Made by a program: the position numbers and the translations under genes
The notes under the pieces: generated by a model
Databases searched by the model: none
What the model was told of the DNA's origin: nothing
Seen by the model: the letters and a program-made list of their open reading frames with translations, nothing else
From: Pelomyxa schiedti
Lineage: Eukaryota; Protista; Evosea
Direction of reading: 5' to 3'
Assembly: GCA_020536535.1 (NCBI GenBank)
Contig: JAHLWZ010000455.1
Location: 1 to 64,000, forward strand
Length of the DNA: 64,000 bases
Part shown: one piece after another, positions 1 to 54,744 of the stretch
Numbering within the stretch: the first letter of the stretch is position 1
How the letters are laid out: the number at the start of each line of letters is the position of its first letter

Positions 1-432
1 CAACGAACTGCCAACAAGTCCGCGCGTAGTTGCAAGTCGCGAGCGGGTTGGCGTGCCAATGCTTGGATCTCGGCGTTCCTGGGTCGATTGACGCAGTGCT
101 TGCTGCCATTTATCTATCTGGCGTTTGTTGTATCGGTCTGTTTTTGTTGTTGTATGACTGCGCACTTCTTTTTTTTCTTTTTCAGTACAAGAGTCGAAAC
201 TTGGCAGCGCCCTCATTCGAAACAAAACAAACAACTTGCAACGCCCACACAATTTGGGTTGGTGTTTTTAGTGGAAATCAGACTTCACTGATAACATGCT
301 TTTTTCCCGGCTGGCCTGAGGATTCGGCCAGTATGGTTGCTGCTAGCTCCTCTACACACTTAGAAAACCCATTTCTCATATGACCCATTTAAAGACATGG
401 CTAAAAATATTTATTGTGATGGATAAGATAGG

Positions 433-981
433 CTAGGTGTTTTTGGTCATTGTTGTTGTGGTGGTTGTGGTAGTTGTGGGTGGAGTGGGGGTTGTTGTGG
501 AGTGGGACTCAGGCGGTGGGAGGGGGGTGCTGGAGTCTGGTGTGGTTGGTTTTGTGGGTTTTGCAGGATGTTGGTGGTGATGTTGATGCTGGTGCAGGTT
601 GTGTGGTTTGATGTGCTTCCTCTTCTCACCTGGGGGTTTGTTTGTGACTAGTGACGGCTTCTCTTGCACTGGAATGTGTGCTTTCACGACTGTGCCGACA
701 GGTGACCCTGGCGGCCTCACATCAAGTGTGCCAGTGGCCCCACTTTGAGTGCTGCTCCTGGCTCGATGCTCTTCANNNNNNNNNNNNNNNNNNNNNNNNN
801 NNNNNNNNNNNNNNNNNNNNNNNNNNNNNNNNNNNNNNNNNNNNNNNNNNNNNNNNNNNNNNNNNNNNNNNNNNNTTCCCTTTTCCTTTTCAAATACCAA
901 AGTCCCACCAAGTTTAGAGGAGTTCTCTGTTTTGACCGTATCTAGAATTACACCGTTGTACATGGGTTTTTTATGGTTCAA
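433..981 (-). CDS. Hypothetical Pro/Thr/His-rich protein fragment spanning the assembly gap
   Basis: 182-codon ORF read through the Ns; low-complexity C-terminus; no recognisable domain; frame across the gap cannot be verified. Confidence 0.3.
   Translation of the reverse strand: MNHKKPMYNGVILDTVKTENSSKLGGTLVFEKEKGXXXXXXXXXXXXXXXXXXXXXXXXXXXXXXXXXXEEHRARSSTQSGATGTLDVRPPGSPVGTVVKAHIPVQEKPSLVTNKPPGEKRKHIKPHNLHQHQHHHQHPAKPTKPTTPDSSTPLPPPESHSTTTPTPPTTTTTTTTTMTKNT
776..875. other. Scaffold gap (exactly 100 N)
   Basis: Run of 100 n, typical placeholder for a gap of unknown size. Confidence 0.98.
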
Positions 982-27810: not shown

Positions 27811-28992
27811 ATGTGTAGCTACCAGAACCAGACCACGTTTGGGGAAAAAGAAATGGAGATCATTGCGAGGCGCAGCCTTGAACACAATGCCATTCATCAC
27901 ATTGATTTATCTGCGAGGACTGATCACCTTTGTCTCACAGAGAGTGACTTCCGGCACATGGAAGATGACACTTCACGGATCAAAGCAATTTGCCGATTAT
28001 TGAACAAAAACGCAGAGGAAGTGTTGGAGGAAATATGCACAAGCGGACCAATGTGGTTAAGCGGTTTCATATTACAGAACACTACAGCCCTAGTGAGTGA
28101 AATACTCTCTGTGAGTAATAACGAGATCGCGGCTTCTACAGAAGCCCAGCCCTTGTTCGAGTCGTTCCCTCATTTCATCAATGAACTTATACTAAGGCAA
28201 TTAAATTCTGTAGATCTACGACAGTGTTCCTGTGTTTGCGCAAGGTGGCACAACATTCTGTCTGCATCAAATATCTCTCTGTGGCAAAATCTGTGCGCCT
28301 ACCATGGCTGGAATGACTTACTCTCTTCACAATTCGAATTCACTAGTCCATGTCAACATAAGCTCCTTTACTTCAGTGCCTGGGATACTATACTCGCACT
28401 AAGGAAACAACCTGCCGCCCCTATTTCACCTATGCACTGGAAAACTGACCAGTTGGCGCTACTGACATACACAATTCGGGCAAGAGGTGCTAAATCTGTT
28501 TATACAAACCTGTCAATATTACGAGGTCAGATTGTGACTCCTTCTGCATTTCGACTAGATGCAAACAAAACCCTAGAGAAACTACTCAACAGTGTCACAG
28601 TAGTTAATGTCACTGACCAAAAGACTGGGAACCCCCATAAATTCCAGGCCACAATGAAATCCGCTTATGGAATGTTCTTTATGAACATCAAACAAGGTGT
28701 GAAGCACAATTCCCGAGGTGATGAGTGGCCTGCCAAAGAGGTAGCACTCAAGCAACTCGCTTCCAGTAAGAAAAAACAATGCTTCTTCTGGAATGCAGAT
28801 ACCATGCCCAACCACAATGAATCAAAACCGTGGAGTGATGAGGATTCAATGCTATTCTCTCGACTACCTGTGAGTCTTGTGACTGGGCTTACACTTGTTC
28901 TTATGCCGCCAGTGTACTCCTCTGAAGTGAGGCAATTCGCACTCCACAACCTTTCTCCCAGACAATACCTCATCCACTATAAGTTGTACTGA
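27811..28992 (+). CDS. F-box protein (single 393-codon exon; probably extended 5' by exons at ~27320-27780)
   Basis: F-box motif FESFPHFINELILRQLNSVDLRQCSCVCARWHNIL; C-terminal domain not recognised. Confidence 0.7.
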   Translation: MCSYQNQTTFGEKEMEIIARRSLEHNAIHHIDLSARTDHLCLTESDFRHMEDDTSRIKAICRLLNKNAEEVLEEICTSGPMWLSGFILQNTTALVSEILSVSNNEIAASTEAQPLFESFPHFINELILRQLNSVDLRQCSCVCARWHNILSASNISLWQNLCAYHGWNDLLSSQFEFTSPCQHKLLYFSAWDTILALRKQPAAPISPMHWKTDQLALLTYTIRARGAKSVYTNLSILRGQIVTPSAFRLDANKTLEKLLNSVTVVNVTDQKTGNPHKFQATMKSAYGMFFMNIKQGVKHNSRGDEWPAKEVALKQLASSKKKQCFFWNADTMPNHNESKPWSDEDSMLFSRLPVSLVTGLTLVLMPPVYSSEVRQFALHNLSPRQYLIHYKLY

Positions 28993-33951: not shown

Positions 33952-34087
33952 ATAACACCAAAAGTTTTAGAAATTTGTTTATACTGTCTTTCCTGTGGAA
34001 TTATTAGCCCGAAGGTCTTGGGTATCTAAGTCCGGCAAACACCGTTCTTCGTTGCAAAATGTTGGAAATTGTTTTTAAATTTTTAAA

Positions 34088-34250
34088 GAGAGGGTGGCGA
34101 TGATCGCCTGCCCTCAACTTGACAGAAATTGTGTACTAGGAATCCCCTTGCGGAGACCCATACCGGAGCTTCGCCTTAGAGTGCAAAGGGCAAAGCTCCG
34201 ACACACGCAACACCCTTAATGATCAGTGAGCGTGAGTACCAGGTAAGTAT
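34088..34250 (-). ncRNA. U1: U1 spliceosomal snRNA, canonical copy
   Basis: 5' AUACUUACCUG; helix H GUAC/GUAC; SL1 loop GAUCAUUAAG (U1-70K); 12-bp SL2 with UUGCAC (U1A); SL3 with GCAA tetraloop; Sm site AAUUUCUG; terminal SL4; ~163 nt. Confidence 0.95.
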
Positions 34251-34303
34251 GAAAGACTTCCTCTGTTGGCCCCCGCGCTGGACTAACCCGCTCCCAAACC
34301 AAA

Positions 34304-34312
34304 TATTATGGG
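34304..34312 (-). promoter_or_regulatory. Upstream sequence element (CCCATAATA, DUSE-like) of canonical U1
   Basis: First C is 62 nt upstream of the U1 5' end; matches the Dictyostelium-type [A/T]CCCA[C/T]AA element at about -60. Confidence 0.75.
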
Positions 34313-34323
34313 TGCAAAAACTT

Positions 34324-34332
34324 CCCATAATA
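34324..34332 (+). promoter_or_regulatory. Upstream sequence element (CCCATAATA, DUSE-like) of variant U1
   Basis: Identical 9-mer in inverted orientation; first C is 60 nt upstream of the variant U1 5' end. Confidence 0.75.
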
Positions 34333-34383
34333 CCGAGCCGAAAACCCCCTCCAAAACCGAGGGGGACAACAATATTCAAACTC

Positions 34384-34542
34384 ATACATACCTGACTGTG
34401 CGCACCCTTGATCATCAAGGAGTGGTGTGCTGTTGTGATGCTGTGCCTGCACTCTGCACAGTGTCTCGGCATGGAATCCCGAAAGGGATATCCAGCAGTG
34501 TAATTTTTGTTTAGCGGAGTTTGCGTCTTGCGCAAACTCCTT
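34384..34542 (+). ncRNA. U1-like snRNA variant (5' AUACAUACCUG)
   Basis: Helix H ACUG/CAGU; SL1 GCGCACC/GGUGUGC with GAUCAUCAAG; SL2 GAUGCUGUGC/GCACAGUGUC with loop CUGCACUCU; SL3 AUCCC-GAAA-GGGAU; Sm site AAUUUUUG; 10-bp SL4 GGAGUUUGCG/CGCAAACUCC; ~159 nt. Confidence 0.9.
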
Positions 34543-34671
34543 CTGTCAAATTCAAAGACAAATAAATGTGGAGGGGATGGGCATGTGTTCAACAGCTCCA
34601 GCTAAAAAGTGCTTTTTTTTTTTTTAACCACAACAGGATATGCCAAATGGGTGTATACAGCGGAGAAAGAG

Positions 34672-35226
34672 TTATCTTGCTTCGAATTGTATCACTAGAT
34701 AAAATATAAACATAAAGCAATGTTCCATGAAAAAAAAATACACACTTTTTGAGGTTCTCTTCTTATATAAAATTCTGTATCCGCAACCTCTGTAGTAAAG
34801 TGAGTCATGCGGGTTAAAGACACACGGCAACTCACTTGCATCTAATGGCGTCGTTTTGTGACATTAACACTTCCATCCCGCAATCTGACATGGTTTTAGA
34901 TTAGGAACCAACAACAAGCAAACGAAAAAACCACAGACACACAAAAGCAAAGCAAAACAAAAACAAAAAACAAAAACAAAAAAAACCCATCGAATGACAG
35001 AGTCACACACACCTCCGCAGACGTAAGTGACTTGGTAGGGCTGCTGGCCGCTGCCCATGCCTCCGGTTGTCGAGGGTGGCGCCGCCGCGCTGGGCGTCGC
35101 CCCCGTGGCCGCCGAGGTGCTCGCTGGCGCCGCTGCCGGCGTCGACGTCCCCGTCGTCGGTGGCGTAGCTGCTGTTGTGGTTGCAGATCCGGTTGGTGTC
35201 GATGCCCCGCTACTACGCCGCGACAT
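34672..35226 (-). CDS. RPB12: RNA polymerase I/II/III shared subunit RPABC4 (Rpb12), with Thr/Ala/Pro-rich N-terminal extension
   Basis: Spliced VTYVCG-DCG...AIRC-..CGYRILYKKRT...QFEAR* zinc ribbon. Confidence 0.92.
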
Positions 35227-35432: not shown

Positions 35433-38400
35433 ATGAGGTTCATTTGGGTGTTGGCGTTTGTGGCGTTTTGTTGGGCGCAGGACAACAACCCCATTGCGGA
35501 TCCAAGTGCTATAATTATCCAAAAGGTTGGTGTTGTGGTTTTTTACTTGTTTACAAAGAGACCTCCAACAAGCTGTCAACTTATTTTTTTTTTTGTTCCC
35601 CTTTCGTAGAATGCACGGTTCACTATCCTCACTGATCGAATGGTGAGGATGGAATGGTCCCCAACGGGAGTTTTTGAGGATGCAGCTACTACTGTTGTGT
35701 TGAACAGGAGGACAACTGTTCCTTCTTTCAAGAAGACTCAGTCTTTTTCATCCCTATGTATGTGGATTTTTTGGGAGTTCCTCTGTATTCTAACTTGACC
35801 ACAAAAGCCATCACTACAAATTACTTGTCAATTCAATACACGTCAACTGGTACGAAGTGCCTGTGTACAGTGGTTTTTATGGTATTCATGGTGTATAGGA
35901 TCAGTTCCTTTCTCTGGAAACAACTTGATCATTAGCCTCACTGTTGGGAGCAACGTAGTTGTCTGGACACCAGACAGTGTTGATTCTGGCAATTTTTACG
36001 GCACTGTTCGTACCTTGGATGGTGTAAATGGCACCCTGAACTTAGATTGCCGGACAAATCCAAATGCTGAGCAGTTGTATTGTGCATATGGATTGGTGAG
36101 TCTGACCCCAGTCCTGCAATAAACCTGACACACTCAGGTTTCTGAATTGGGTTGGACTTTAGTGGATGACTCTGAATCCGCACTATTTGATTCTAACGAC
36201 TACCAGTGGATACTACCTCGCAACACAACAGACCAGTACGATTGGTACTTCTTGGGCTATGCCCGTGACCACAAAAGTGCTCTTGCGGACTTCACAAAAA
36301 TCGCTGGCAAAATTCCCATTCCCCCAAGATATGCATTTGGAGTTTTCTTTTCAAGGTACCGTTGAGATCTACTTTTCCTTACCCTAAGGGCATCAGGTGG
36401 TGGGCTTATAGTGACTATGACACCCGGCAAATAGTTACAGAATACGAGCAACACCAAACACCTCTCGACGTGGTTGTAACGGTAACTCCCCCCACATGCT
36501 AACCCTTTTCTAAAATCATTTCCCTTCCAGGATATGGATTGGTAAGGATATGTGTTGGTGACATTTTTGACTATTTCTTCAGGCATATTACATTCTACAA
36601 AGAAGCTGACCAAGGTGTTGTTGACCAAGCAGGGCAGGTAAAAATTTCGAGTTTCCACTTTTTTTTTCACTGTCTTCCAGACAATTGGTTGGACAGGGTA
36701 CACATGGGATACACATTTATTCCCGTACCCTGAGCAATACACTTCTTGGTGCAAACAAAAGGGATTGAAGAACACCGTCAATATTCACCCTGCATCAGGA
36801 GTACCCGTTTTCTGCCTATCTGATCATTTTCTTACCTAATCAGGTGCAACCATGGGAGGAAGAATACCCCCCAATGGCTACCGCTATGGGTATAGACCCG
36901 GCTACTCAGATTTATGTTCCGTTTGACATCAACAACTCCACTTTTGCGTTCAACTTCCTGGATATTGTAATGCAACCAGTGCTGGATAAGGGCATCGACT
37001 TCTTCTGTAAATTTTCTCTTTGATATACTTTTTCCCTCTCATTACTTCTAGGGTTGGATTGGCAGCAATGGACTAATGGTGGGTTCTTGCTTTCATTTTC
37101 TAAGAGTACGGCACTAAACTAAAAAAAGGAAACCCAAATCCTACAATTATGCTGAACTATGGTATTTTTGCTCATTTTCATATTCTTTTTATAACCTCAA
37201 TTCTTCAGTTTTCTTTACCAACCCACAGCGAGTTGGGTCTGACAATAGAGGCATGATACTCCACAGGTGTCTTTCCCTTTAGGTAACATACACAACAACT
37301 AAAAAGTTTCTATTGGCAGATGGGGTGGATTGGGCAATCACCGGTATCAAATGGGATTTTCTGGTGATGTTGTCCCCTCTTGGGAATCACTTGATTTCCA
37401 ACCATATTTCACCTTGACTGCCGCCAATGTACTCTACGGGTAAAGAAAGAATCCCGTCTTCCATTTTATTTATGCTTGACTTAAGGTACTGGAGCCATGA
37501 TATTGGTGGACATACAGAACCTTGTCCTGCTGAACTTTATACAAGATGGGTGCAATGGGGAGTTTGGTCCCCAGTGTTCAGAACTCACTGCACCAAGGAC
37601 CCAGATAACGATAGGAGGGTATCTAATTTCTGTTTTTGCCATCATGTTCAATTTTTTTTAAAAAGATATGGATTTATCCTTTGGAAAACTTTCAAATTAT
37701 GAGAGATGCCATTGCTTTAAGATCGCAGGTTGTTCATTATTTCCTTTCCCAGTATTTCTTTATGCTGAATCACACAAGATGGTACCGTACATTTACAACC
37801 ATGCCAAAGTAGCCTATGACACTGGAGTATCCCTTGTGCATCCTCTATTTTATGACTGGCCCGAGGAAGCTGAGGCGTATGAGTCTAGGTTCTCACAGTT
37901 CATGTTCGGCTCAGATATTCTTGTCTCACCAATTACGGAGCCTGTGGACGAATGGACACAAATGACAACTAAATGTACAGTGCCACACCATCTTTTTTCA
38001 GTTCCTGAGTTGGTTGGTTTTATGCAGACACATTCATACCCGAGGGAACGTGGATACAATGGGCAACCGGGTCAGCTTATACAGGTCCAATGACAATTGA
38101 AAAAGAGTACACTCTGCACGAAACTCCTGTCTTCGTGAAAGCTGGCGCTGTATGGAAATACCTTATTGGTTATTGTATTCCTTTTCTTTTACTGTCACTA
38201 GGTAATACCTATGTTACCTTCAAGCAAACCTCTTACTGGAAGCGCAAAGGAAGCTTACACCTCCCTCCTCTTAACAATTTTCCCATATAAAACTGCTTCG
38301 GGATCCACAACACTGTATGAAGATGATGGTGAGACTGACGACTACCAAAATGGAGTCTATGCAGAGACTACCATCACGTACGAAACAGTTTGGTTTCTGT

Positions 38401-52583: not shown

Positions 52584-54744
52584 TTAGGGGGCCTCTGGTT
52601 GCTGTTGATGGAAAAGTACTTGTTCCAACTTGTCCATGGTGGCAGCAGCTCCCTTGATGGGCATTACCTCATTGAAGTTGGTTGCTGCTATCCTACAGAA
52701 GCACGGATCGGCGCTCTGCTCCGCTGACGAAAAGACAGTGATGACCTTGTTATTATGGGTGTACTGGATGCCGTGGGGGTAGGCGTCATGGCTTCTGATG
52801 ATGCAACACAGATGATTGTCTTGAAGAAACTGGTCAGTTATATCAGGTCCCCAGCACTGGAAGCCTTCACGCACAGACGCTGTCATCCCTGGCTTGTCAG
52901 AGGGGCTGTTCCACAGCAATTCTTTCAGTAAATCAGAGGATACTTTTTTGGACAGCTTTGTTAATCGAACCTCTTAAGAGAGAGGTAAAAGGACACACCG
53001 GAGTTTTCCCAACGCGGAGAATTTTGAATAGCAGTCATGGTGACGTTAGGACCAATGCCACCGTGGGTTACAAAGATTCCTCTTGAAGATTGGAACGATA
53101 TCACTGATGCAAGCGGAAGTTCCTTATACAGATCAACACATTTATCCCATAGACTGTGGGCCATTATTGGCCCAAATACAGCTTGGAGGCATTTGGAGTG
53201 GCCATAACCAGCACTAATGAACGTGCACTCATGGTTTCCGCGATTCATGAAGACCTGACCGGGGTGTGTCACAAGCATCTCGCACAGAGTTGTCAATACG
53301 TCCATCCCAAATGCTCCTCGGTCAATAAAGTCACCTACATTAGAAGACAGTGAGAAAAGGTGTTAGGTTGGCAATTAAAAGACCTCACCATTGAAGAGCC
53401 ACTTGTTGGTTTCGGATGGTACCCCACCAGCACTAATGGCCCTGCATAAAGTTAAAGTTGCGTAAAATAATCAAAGCACGTACTTTGTTAAGCACTCCAA
53501 ATTACCGTGTAAATCCCCAACTATGTTGATGTGACTATCGGTCCCTGTGAGAGTGATTTCATTCAGTAAGTTCCTTGTCTTGAGTAGTTTGGTGGCAGCC
53601 GTGAGCCAGTAAATGTGGGTCTGGAAAAGGGCGGTCTTTATATCTATACAGGTTGGAGAGTATTGATCCCAACTTCCCATGGCCAAATTGTCCAACTTCG
53701 GAGCTGACACTTGCATTAGTTCCAGACTCGTGGAAACATGTAGAAAAGAAGGGCAGAACCCAAACCTGCGTGTGCCCTTGGAGTGCCTATGCTTGTTTTG
53801 CAAATGCTGGGTTTCTTGGAATCTGGTGTACCATCGATAAGAGTCGCAACCACATCAAGGCGATAAACCTGGCGCAGCAGGGGAATCTAGTACCTCAGAG
53901 GGTGGATTCAGTATCGGCTCGGCTTGTCTCTTTCTTCCCGCTACTTAACAATAAAATGTCAGGAGATGTACACTGTGCCATTCCAACAGATAGAGACGGT
54001 GCTCACGCTTCTCAGTGTCACGATTGTTCTCGTCATCAGCAACGTTGGTCTGCTTTGCCGCAGTTTGAAAAACATGGGAACCCTTTCTCGGCGTGACTGG
54101 TGTTTTCTCTGGGAAGTTAATTAACAAACAGTTGAACAGAGAACGTAAAACTAAGTGAACCTTGGCGTGCTGTTTGCAATGGTGACCGCGGACCCAATGT
54201 AAGTACCTTCTTGGTGAGGCATTCCACCTGCCCTGACACAGGGATTTCCGTGGGGGTGTACTGAGCTTGAAGAACTGTAGAACCCGAGGATTTTTCGGCA
54301 GGCGACTTCTTTGTTTCGTACGTAACGAGTATTTAGCAACGGAAATAGGAAAGGTTTGCTTACGGGATAAGTACCAAAACTGGGGAGAAGACCACTTTGA
54401 GTCCGATCGAATGCAGGAATAGTAGTACGAGTAGGAGTGGTTTCTATTGCGCTTTGAGTACGCCCGTATCACGCGTCAACATCGCTGCCGTAATGAAAAA
54501 GATGAAGGAAAATCTTACTGCTAGGGGTAGTATCACCAGCAGAATCAACCGCCGTAGTAGTATTCGTATTCGTGATAGGCGTAGAAGTAGAAGGTGTCGG
54601 CGTATCGGTGACAGAGGTTTTTTGTGCCGGATTAGGCGTAGTTGTACCCGACGAAGACGACTGTTGTTTGCCACTGCCGCGGCGGAAGATACCAAATACG
54701 GTACTAATTATGCTCCACACAGGTGACGACGACTCCTCTGTCAT
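52584..54744 (-). CDS. Divergent PPP-family Ser/Thr phosphatase, paralog B, with long Thr/Ser-rich N-terminus
   Basis: GDLHGN, WLFNGDFIDRG, RGNHE, THGG, LLWNSP, IIRSHD, VITVFSS. Confidence 0.85.

Follow-up and report, generated by a model that had tools for sequence, protein, structure and literature searches.

A U1 snRNA gene with A at position 5 of the splice-site recognition arm, and its divergently oriented canonical U1 neighbour in Pelomyxa schiedti, as a possible member of a pool of U1 forms

Few RNA sequences of eukaryotes are as conserved as the 5' arm of U1 snRNA. Nucleotides 8 to 3 of U1 pair with intron positions +1 to +6, with nucleotide 5 opposite position +4, and a U at arm position 5 counts, to our knowledge, as universal. 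A U1 snRNA with an ACAUAC arm was reportedly described from Physarum polycephalum by Myslinski, Wilhelm and Branlant in 1989. The same paper is cited for Lewy body disease in a neuro-imaging review (PMC11064927), which is an evident citation error. According to a preprint of the Roy laboratory (bioRxiv 10.1101/2022.06.08.495308), P. polycephalum combines an ACAUAC U1 with GUAUGU as the commonest donor, and has modified U1 genes alongside standard ones; the U1 of Entamoeba reads ACAAAC and fits GUUUGU donors, and that of Mastigamoeba balamuthi reads ACGUAC. Changes of the U1 arm track the donor consensus in these related amoebae (bioRxiv 10.1101/2022.06.08.495308). In humans, variant U1 genes (vU1) reach less than 0.001% of canonical U1 expression from their own loci, and few of them affect splicing (PMC10870369). 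The genes of P. schiedti, an anaerobic archamoeba, contain 7.43 introns each on average, of which 98.4% are of the GT-AG type (PMC8887013), and no mention of Pelomyxa U1 was found in the literature searched.

A search of the window, i.e. the whole 64-kb stretch of P. schiedti DNA under study, with Rfam cmscan yielded two U1 genes, a variant and a canonical copy, and no further gene of this kind; their features are compiled in Table 1. The variant gene was assigned to U1 (RF00003) with 79.3 bits (gathering score 69.5, E-value 5.5e-18) by a match that spans model positions 1 to 166 and is not truncated. U11 or another snRNA was rejected as an identity of this locus, U1 being the sole Rfam match there up to an E-value of 1. 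The RNA starts with ATACATACCTG and shows A in place of U at position 5 (34388), as read from one single-cell-derived assembly, the sole assembly with this locus. A pairwise alignment with the canonical copy, which starts with ATACTTACCTGG on the minus strand, revealed identity at 10 of the 11 arm nucleotides, position 5 alone being different; the arm feature AUACUUACCUG of RF00003 is likewise matched at 10 of 11 nucleotides with A5, and the arm remains single-stranded upon folding. Another arm-like match, ATACAAACCTG at 28502, was discarded, as it lies inside an F-box gene and is devoid of a U1 body.

Table 1. Coordinates of the two U1 snRNA genes and of their associated sequence elements in the window
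Feature	Position	Strand	Remarks
Variant U1 snRNA gene, A5 arm AUACAUACCUG	34384..34542	+	159 nt; Rfam RF00003 and own fold
5' splice-site recognition arm of the variant U1	34384..34394	+	Sequence and alignment with the canonical copy
Canonical U1 snRNA gene (AUACUUACCUGG)	34088..34250	-	163 nt; Rfam RF00003, 74.6 bits; divergent from the variant
Spacer common to both U1 genes, holding both promoters	34251..34383		133 bp
CCCATAATA, DUSE-like upstream element of the variant	34324..34332	+	-60 to -52; exact inverted pair
CCCATAATA, DUSE-like upstream element of the canonical copy	34304..34312	-	-62 to -54; exact inverted pair
AAATTCAAAGACAA, candidate 3'-end formation box of the variant	34548..34561	+	6 nt past the 3' end
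AAATTTAAAAACAA, candidate 3'-end formation box of the canonical copy	34069..34082	-	6 nt past the 3' end

Folding of the variant sequence alone with RNAfold resulted in helix H, the stem-loops SL1 to SL3, a single-stranded Sm site and then SL4. The four-way junction of helix H and SL1 to SL3 together with the 3' SL4 represents the minimum-free-energy shape (-66.9 kcal/mol, z = -5.4), and none of 200 shuffled sequences was as stable. The SL1 loop GAUCAUCAAGG is aligned to the model loop and agrees with the U1-70K loop consensus GAUCAnnAAGG, and the SL2 loop CCUGCAC retains the GCAC core of the U1A consensus AUUGCAC with its first bases changed. The Sm site AAUUUUUGU, which resembles the consensus AAUUUNUGG, is located in single-stranded form between SL3 and SL4. 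These data bear out the original prediction of a complete U1 fold at exactly these coordinates with an A at position 5 of its 5' end.

The canonical neighbour, which scores lower against RF00003 than the variant, likewise adopts the U1 shape when folded alone (-62.6 kcal/mol, z = -4.5; 0 of 200 shuffles reach this energy) and contains the Sm site AAUUUCUGU, the U1-70K loop GAUCAUUAAGG and the SL2 loop UUUGCAC. A comparison of the two genes indicated that alignment columns paired in both folds are identical in only 42% of the cases (35/83), whereas columns unpaired in both folds are identical in 75% (33/44). In helix H all four base pairs are altered on both sides with the pairing intact, and according to RNAalifold 10 of the 29 consensus pairs have been retained through double changes between the two copies. 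Both copies preserve the U1-70K loop, the GCAC core within the SL2 loop and the Sm site. Since the stems turn over with compensation and the single-stranded functional parts are spared, a pattern that decay would not produce, the two genes can be regarded as old paralogues that are both maintained as U1. The A5 gene accordingly is a genuine U1 that is seemingly maintained by selection. In this respect the original prediction, which had pointed to stems that differ almost completely and yet pair, and to selection rather than decay, is corroborated.

The same comparison bears on the alternative that the variant is a non-functional copy, i.e. a pseudogene, or that the A at 34388 results from an amplification or assembly error. 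The assembly was indeed obtained from amplified single cells (PMC8887013). An error at exactly this base is improbable a priori, however, and conservation extends to the loops, the Sm site, the other arm positions and the motifs in the promoter and at the 3' end, while the stems diverged with compensating changes. Decay is disfavoured because precisely the functional parts were spared, and a pseudogene or sequencing error is thus unlikely; in our estimate the reading as a whole is highly improbable.

With respect to transcription signals, each of the two genes is preceded by its own copy of the 9-bp element CCCATAATA, so that the original prediction of an upstream element belonging to the variant holds. 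Exact copies of CCCATAATA occur only three times in the 64 kb, and the third one (52751-52759) was taken as a chance occurrence, the sequence on that strand being by reading an open coding sequence. In dictyostelids, a DUSE containing CCC is located about 60 nt upstream of non-coding RNA genes (PMC7919456), and the CCCATAATA boxes fit this element by their position and their CCC core. Inspection of the 133-bp spacer by eye did not bring up a TATA-like box around -30 for either gene. Downstream, a 14-nt motif (AAATTYAAARACAA) follows both genes with an equal offset of 6 nt, and its two occurrences are alike at 12 of 14 positions; as these two sites themselves served to define the pattern, the evidence consists in the equal offset and the 12/14 identity and not in the count of the motif in the window. 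This motif is a candidate for a Pelomyxa snRNA 3' box. Judged by these sequence elements, both U1 genes seem to be equally equipped with signals, and the head-to-head layout suggests that they are co-expressed.

Further annotation of the window provided the following observations. The gene at 34672-35226 on the minus strand encodes RPABC4 (Rpb12), its first exon being 100% identical to the NCBI entry for RPABC4 of P. schiedti, and contains three introns with the donors GTGTGT, GTGAGT and GTGTGT. The NCBI protein is encoded on contig JAHLWZ010000455.1 of assembly GCA_020536535.1, whose initial 64 kb constitute the window. In the deduced product of 109 amino acids, about 60 N-terminal residues form a low-complexity extension, in which T, A, P and S are abundant, ahead of the zinc ribbon; the product is longer than usual for this subunit in other eukaryotes. 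A tRNA-Ala(UGC) gene was detected at 1012-1084 on the plus strand, just downstream of a scaffold gap of 100 N (776-875).

The donor sites of P. schiedti were analysed in two sets of introns. The annotated set, a small sample, comprises 66 introns that were obtained by mapping three P. schiedti proteins exactly onto genomic DNA, namely RPABC4 from the window itself and two GH31 paralogues from contigs other than that of the window (L050 and L051), which were returned by a profile search and stand in for the GH31 gene of the window, and its information content was measured against the intron-interior composition. The predicted set comprises 236 introns of 36 to 80 nt that were called in the window by a purpose-written Viterbi gene finder, whose score includes nothing from +3 to +8. 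The resulting gene limits are identical to those of NCBI at most ends, and product lengths that deviate from NCBI's by a few per cent imply that some of the predicted introns are wrong. A subset of 'forced-donor' introns was dropped, as in-frame stops in GTAA and GTGA would bias position +4 towards A. In the window and in the two GH31 contigs, the introns are very short and uniform, with a median of 45 nt and most of them between 40 and 55 nt, and exons can be as small as 11 nt, as at 36531-36541 in the GH31 gene of the window.

In the annotated set, G is found at position -1 in 65% of the donors (1.11 bit), A at +3 in 58% (0.52 bit) and G at +5 in 50% (0.65 bit), whereas the distribution at +4 (U 44%, A 32%, C 15%, G 9%) corresponds to 0.04 bit (p = 0.31). 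The predicted set revealed the same pattern, with 0.25 bit at +3, 0.23 bit at +5 and 0.01 bit (p = 0.28) at +4 (U 34%, A 27%, C 27%, G 12%). Position +4 is therefore the only one in the duplex of U1 and the 5' splice site that is devoid of information, while +3 and +5 retain a signal; +4U donors are the commonest class in both sets, and there is no dominant +4 consensus. The frequency of G at +5 differs among the +4 classes: it is equal in +4U and +4A donors (46% versus 48% in the predicted set, 18/29 versus 12/21 in the annotated set) and lower in +4C donors (19% in the predicted set, Fisher p = 1.7e-4; 2/10 in the annotated set). Such a distribution is expected if the pairs A5:+4U and U5:+4A are equivalent. 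It agrees less well with a single canonical U1 whose mismatch is compensated elsewhere, as this should affect +4U and +4C donors equally.

By the established geometry, A5 pairs with +4U in Watson-Crick fashion, as had been claimed in the original prediction. Our preferred reading, to which we give slightly better than even chances, is that the A5 gene is a functional U1 paralogue within a pool of U1 forms that jointly cover the free +4 position. A DUSE-type snRNA promoter would drive transcription of the variant in head-to-head orientation to the canonical gene, so that both U1 RNAs would be made together. With its U1-70K loop, U1A-like loop, Sm site and four-way fold, the variant would be expected to assemble as an ordinary U1 snRNP, which would bind 5' splice sites through arm nucleotides 3 to 11, with A5 facing +4U and the canonical U5 facing +4A. 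The pool, represented at this locus by U5 and A5, would be able to pair with any +4 base, as U5 could pair with A (and with G by wobble), A5 with U, and a G5 form, if one is present, with C (and with U by wobble). From thermodynamic considerations, A5-U1 would be the form that chiefly holds +4U introns. We thus infer for A5-U1 expression, assembly into snRNPs and preferential use by +4U introns.

The main rival to this pool is a tolerated neutral variant, i.e. a working U1 in a system in which pairing at +4 adds little, position 5 is free to drift and A5 has no preference for a donor class. A flat +4 position is equally expected if pairing at +4 is irrelevant here and position 5 of U1 is neutral: the composition at +4 is indistinguishable from that of the intron interior, the donors are weak overall, and perfect GUAUGU donors are not enriched (about 6 observed versus about 6 expected from single-position frequencies). 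Moreover, introns with a pyrimidine at +4 are spliced with a canonical U1 in yeasts, Giardia and Trichomonas (bioRxiv 10.1101/2022.06.08.495308). On the other hand, the clear signals at +3 and +5 imply that the helix of U1 and the 5' splice site matters, and a mismatch in the middle of this helix should cost energy. Neutral drift is also less easy to reconcile with an arm that differs at position 5 only, while the stems differ at about half of their positions, with the frequency of +5G in +4U donors, which resembles that of +4A and not that of +4C donors, and with the arm changes that match the donor consensus in Entamoeba and Mastigamoeba (bioRxiv 10.1101/2022.06.08.495308). Neutrality is in our view a possible explanation, but one with chances well short of even.

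The donor data also bear on a strict dual system as envisaged in the original prediction, in which two specialised U1 snRNPs would serve a GUAAGU and a GUAUGU class of donors; such a system might have regulatory consequences. Such a division would be in line with the pairing of both genes under one bidirectional promoter region, with +4U and +4A as the two largest annotated classes and with the presence of the +5G signal in both of them. However, the donors form a continuum without two consensus classes, and between 24% and 39% of them carry C or G at +4. The lack of information at +4 and the occurrence of GUAUGU at its single-position expectation speak against the postulated pair of donor classes, and a common promoter favours co-expression over differential regulation. 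A strict dual system is consequently considered improbable.

Metagenome contigs of JGI were scanned for U1 starts with a base other than U at position 5. The scan yielded 48 pattern matches, most of them chance matches in unrelated sequence, and 8 of the 48 reached the Rfam gathering score for U1. One A5 U1 gene was found in identical form on four contigs (L004:2236-2401 on the minus strand, L006, L036 and L043) and one G5 U1 gene in identical form on three contigs (L007:1638-1803 on the plus strand, L020 and L046). Both genes originate from one sample series (Ga0209914/15/30/35) and score at least the Rfam gathering threshold; they have about 55% G+C and similar 3' halves, their SL1 and SL2 stems are divergent, and a CCATAAA-like box is located near -63. 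The adjoining cap methyltransferase gene has relatives of only about 30% identity. These two genes probably belong to one eukaryote with a multi-arm U1 set like that of Pelomyxa.

Additionally, a contig with 46-47% G+C (L032) contains a G5 U1-like gene (124-290, plus strand) followed in tandem by a U1-like gene with canonical arm (617-785, plus strand), the canonical start being located 493 nt downstream. Both are below the Rfam gathering threshold and possess the U1A loop. The sub-threshold G5 gene is present on a second contig as well (L027:3383, plus strand) and has a clear Sm site; on the latter contig it is preceded by a CCCATAA box at a distance of about 64 nt. Upstream regions were inspected on one contig for each of three genes, namely the four-contig A5 gene, the G5 gene found on three contigs and the G5 gene below the threshold, and CCCATAA- or CCATAAA-like boxes were observed near -63 in them. 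Another A5 gene, of animal type, was detected with 152 bits on contig L010 (3717-3882, plus strand) together with a U2 gene (906-1097), a histone 3' stem-loop (1974-2019) and a second U1 cut by the contig end. Judging from this context, it looks like an expressed-type variant U1 of some animal in an snRNA/histone cluster; this animal-like cluster showed no CCCATAA-like upstream box. The A5 and G5 genes in metagenomes indicate that variation at position 5 among U1 paralogues is not confined to one assembly, and their occurrence in environmental eukaryotes argues further against a pseudogene or sequence error in P. schiedti.

Beyond the single locus, it is conceivable, though we hold it with considerable reserve, that Pelomyxa and perhaps the Archamoebae or other amoebozoans maintain a standing repertoire of U1 forms whose sole difference is the base at arm position 5 (U, A or G), so that every +4 base would find a partner, that this repertoire causes the loss of information at +4, and that each intron is served by the matching isoform. 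If true, such a repertoire would represent a natural, genome-wide splitting of splice-site recognition among U1 isoforms. Why lineages with a pyrimidine at +4 mostly leave the U1 arm unadjusted is an unsolved question of intron evolution. Pelomyxa unites an intron-rich genome, canonical and A5 U1 genes side by side and a loss of information exactly at +4, and these three features together open the co-evolution of U1 and splice sites to direct testing. Moreover, it provides a third archamoebal data point beside Entamoeba and Mastigamoeba.

The comparison with known systems places the locus closest to amoebozoan precedents. As in Physarum, likewise an amoebozoan with common +4U donors, a change of U5 to A makes the arm complementary to GUAUGU, and the changed arm coexists with a standard U1. 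The two organisms belong to distant lineages, Physarum to the Myxogastria and Pelomyxa to the Archamoebae, and GUAUGU is the commonest donor in Physarum, whereas Pelomyxa is without any preference at +4; a head-to-head pairing with the canonical copy has been described for Pelomyxa only. Mastigamoeba and Entamoeba are Archamoebae like Pelomyxa, and in them a change at position 5, accompanied in Entamoeba by one at position 6, restores pairing to donors that are rich in pyrimidines at +4. The A5 gene of Pelomyxa corresponds to these co-evolved systems in that an arm substitution at position 5 or 6 occurs in an otherwise intact U1. However, Mastigamoeba and Entamoeba are reported with a single U1 type for one dominant donor consensus, whereas in Pelomyxa the changed arm is not the sole type, a canonical copy lying 133 bp away, and no +4 base dominates.

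Human vU1 genes resemble the Pelomyxa pair in forming a multigene U1 family, some members of which are expressed, capped and present in snRNPs and have been proposed to act at non-canonical sites (PMC3561869, PMC10870369). In contrast, they are scattered copies with many changes, whereas the Pelomyxa copy has one changed arm base and a full set of promoter and 3' signals, on a par with its canonical partner. Saccharomycotina, Giardia and Trichomonas likewise have introns with a pyrimidine at +4 and donors of the GUAUGU type, but they keep ACUUAC and tolerate the mismatch (bioRxiv 10.1101/2022.06.08.495308), whereas Pelomyxa possesses the matching A5. Accordingly, the suggestion that the system might be undescribed goes too far in view of ACAUAC beside a standard U1 in Physarum, ACGUAC in Mastigamoeba and ACAAAC in Entamoeba (bioRxiv 10.1101/2022.06.08.495308). 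The novelty apparently lies in the head-to-head arrangement, in the equal signals of the two genes and in a +4 position with zero information between informative +3 and +5 positions. Both an A5 arm and its occurrence beside a standard U1 are already precedented in Amoebozoa, and the locus of P. schiedti extends this known but rare phenomenon.
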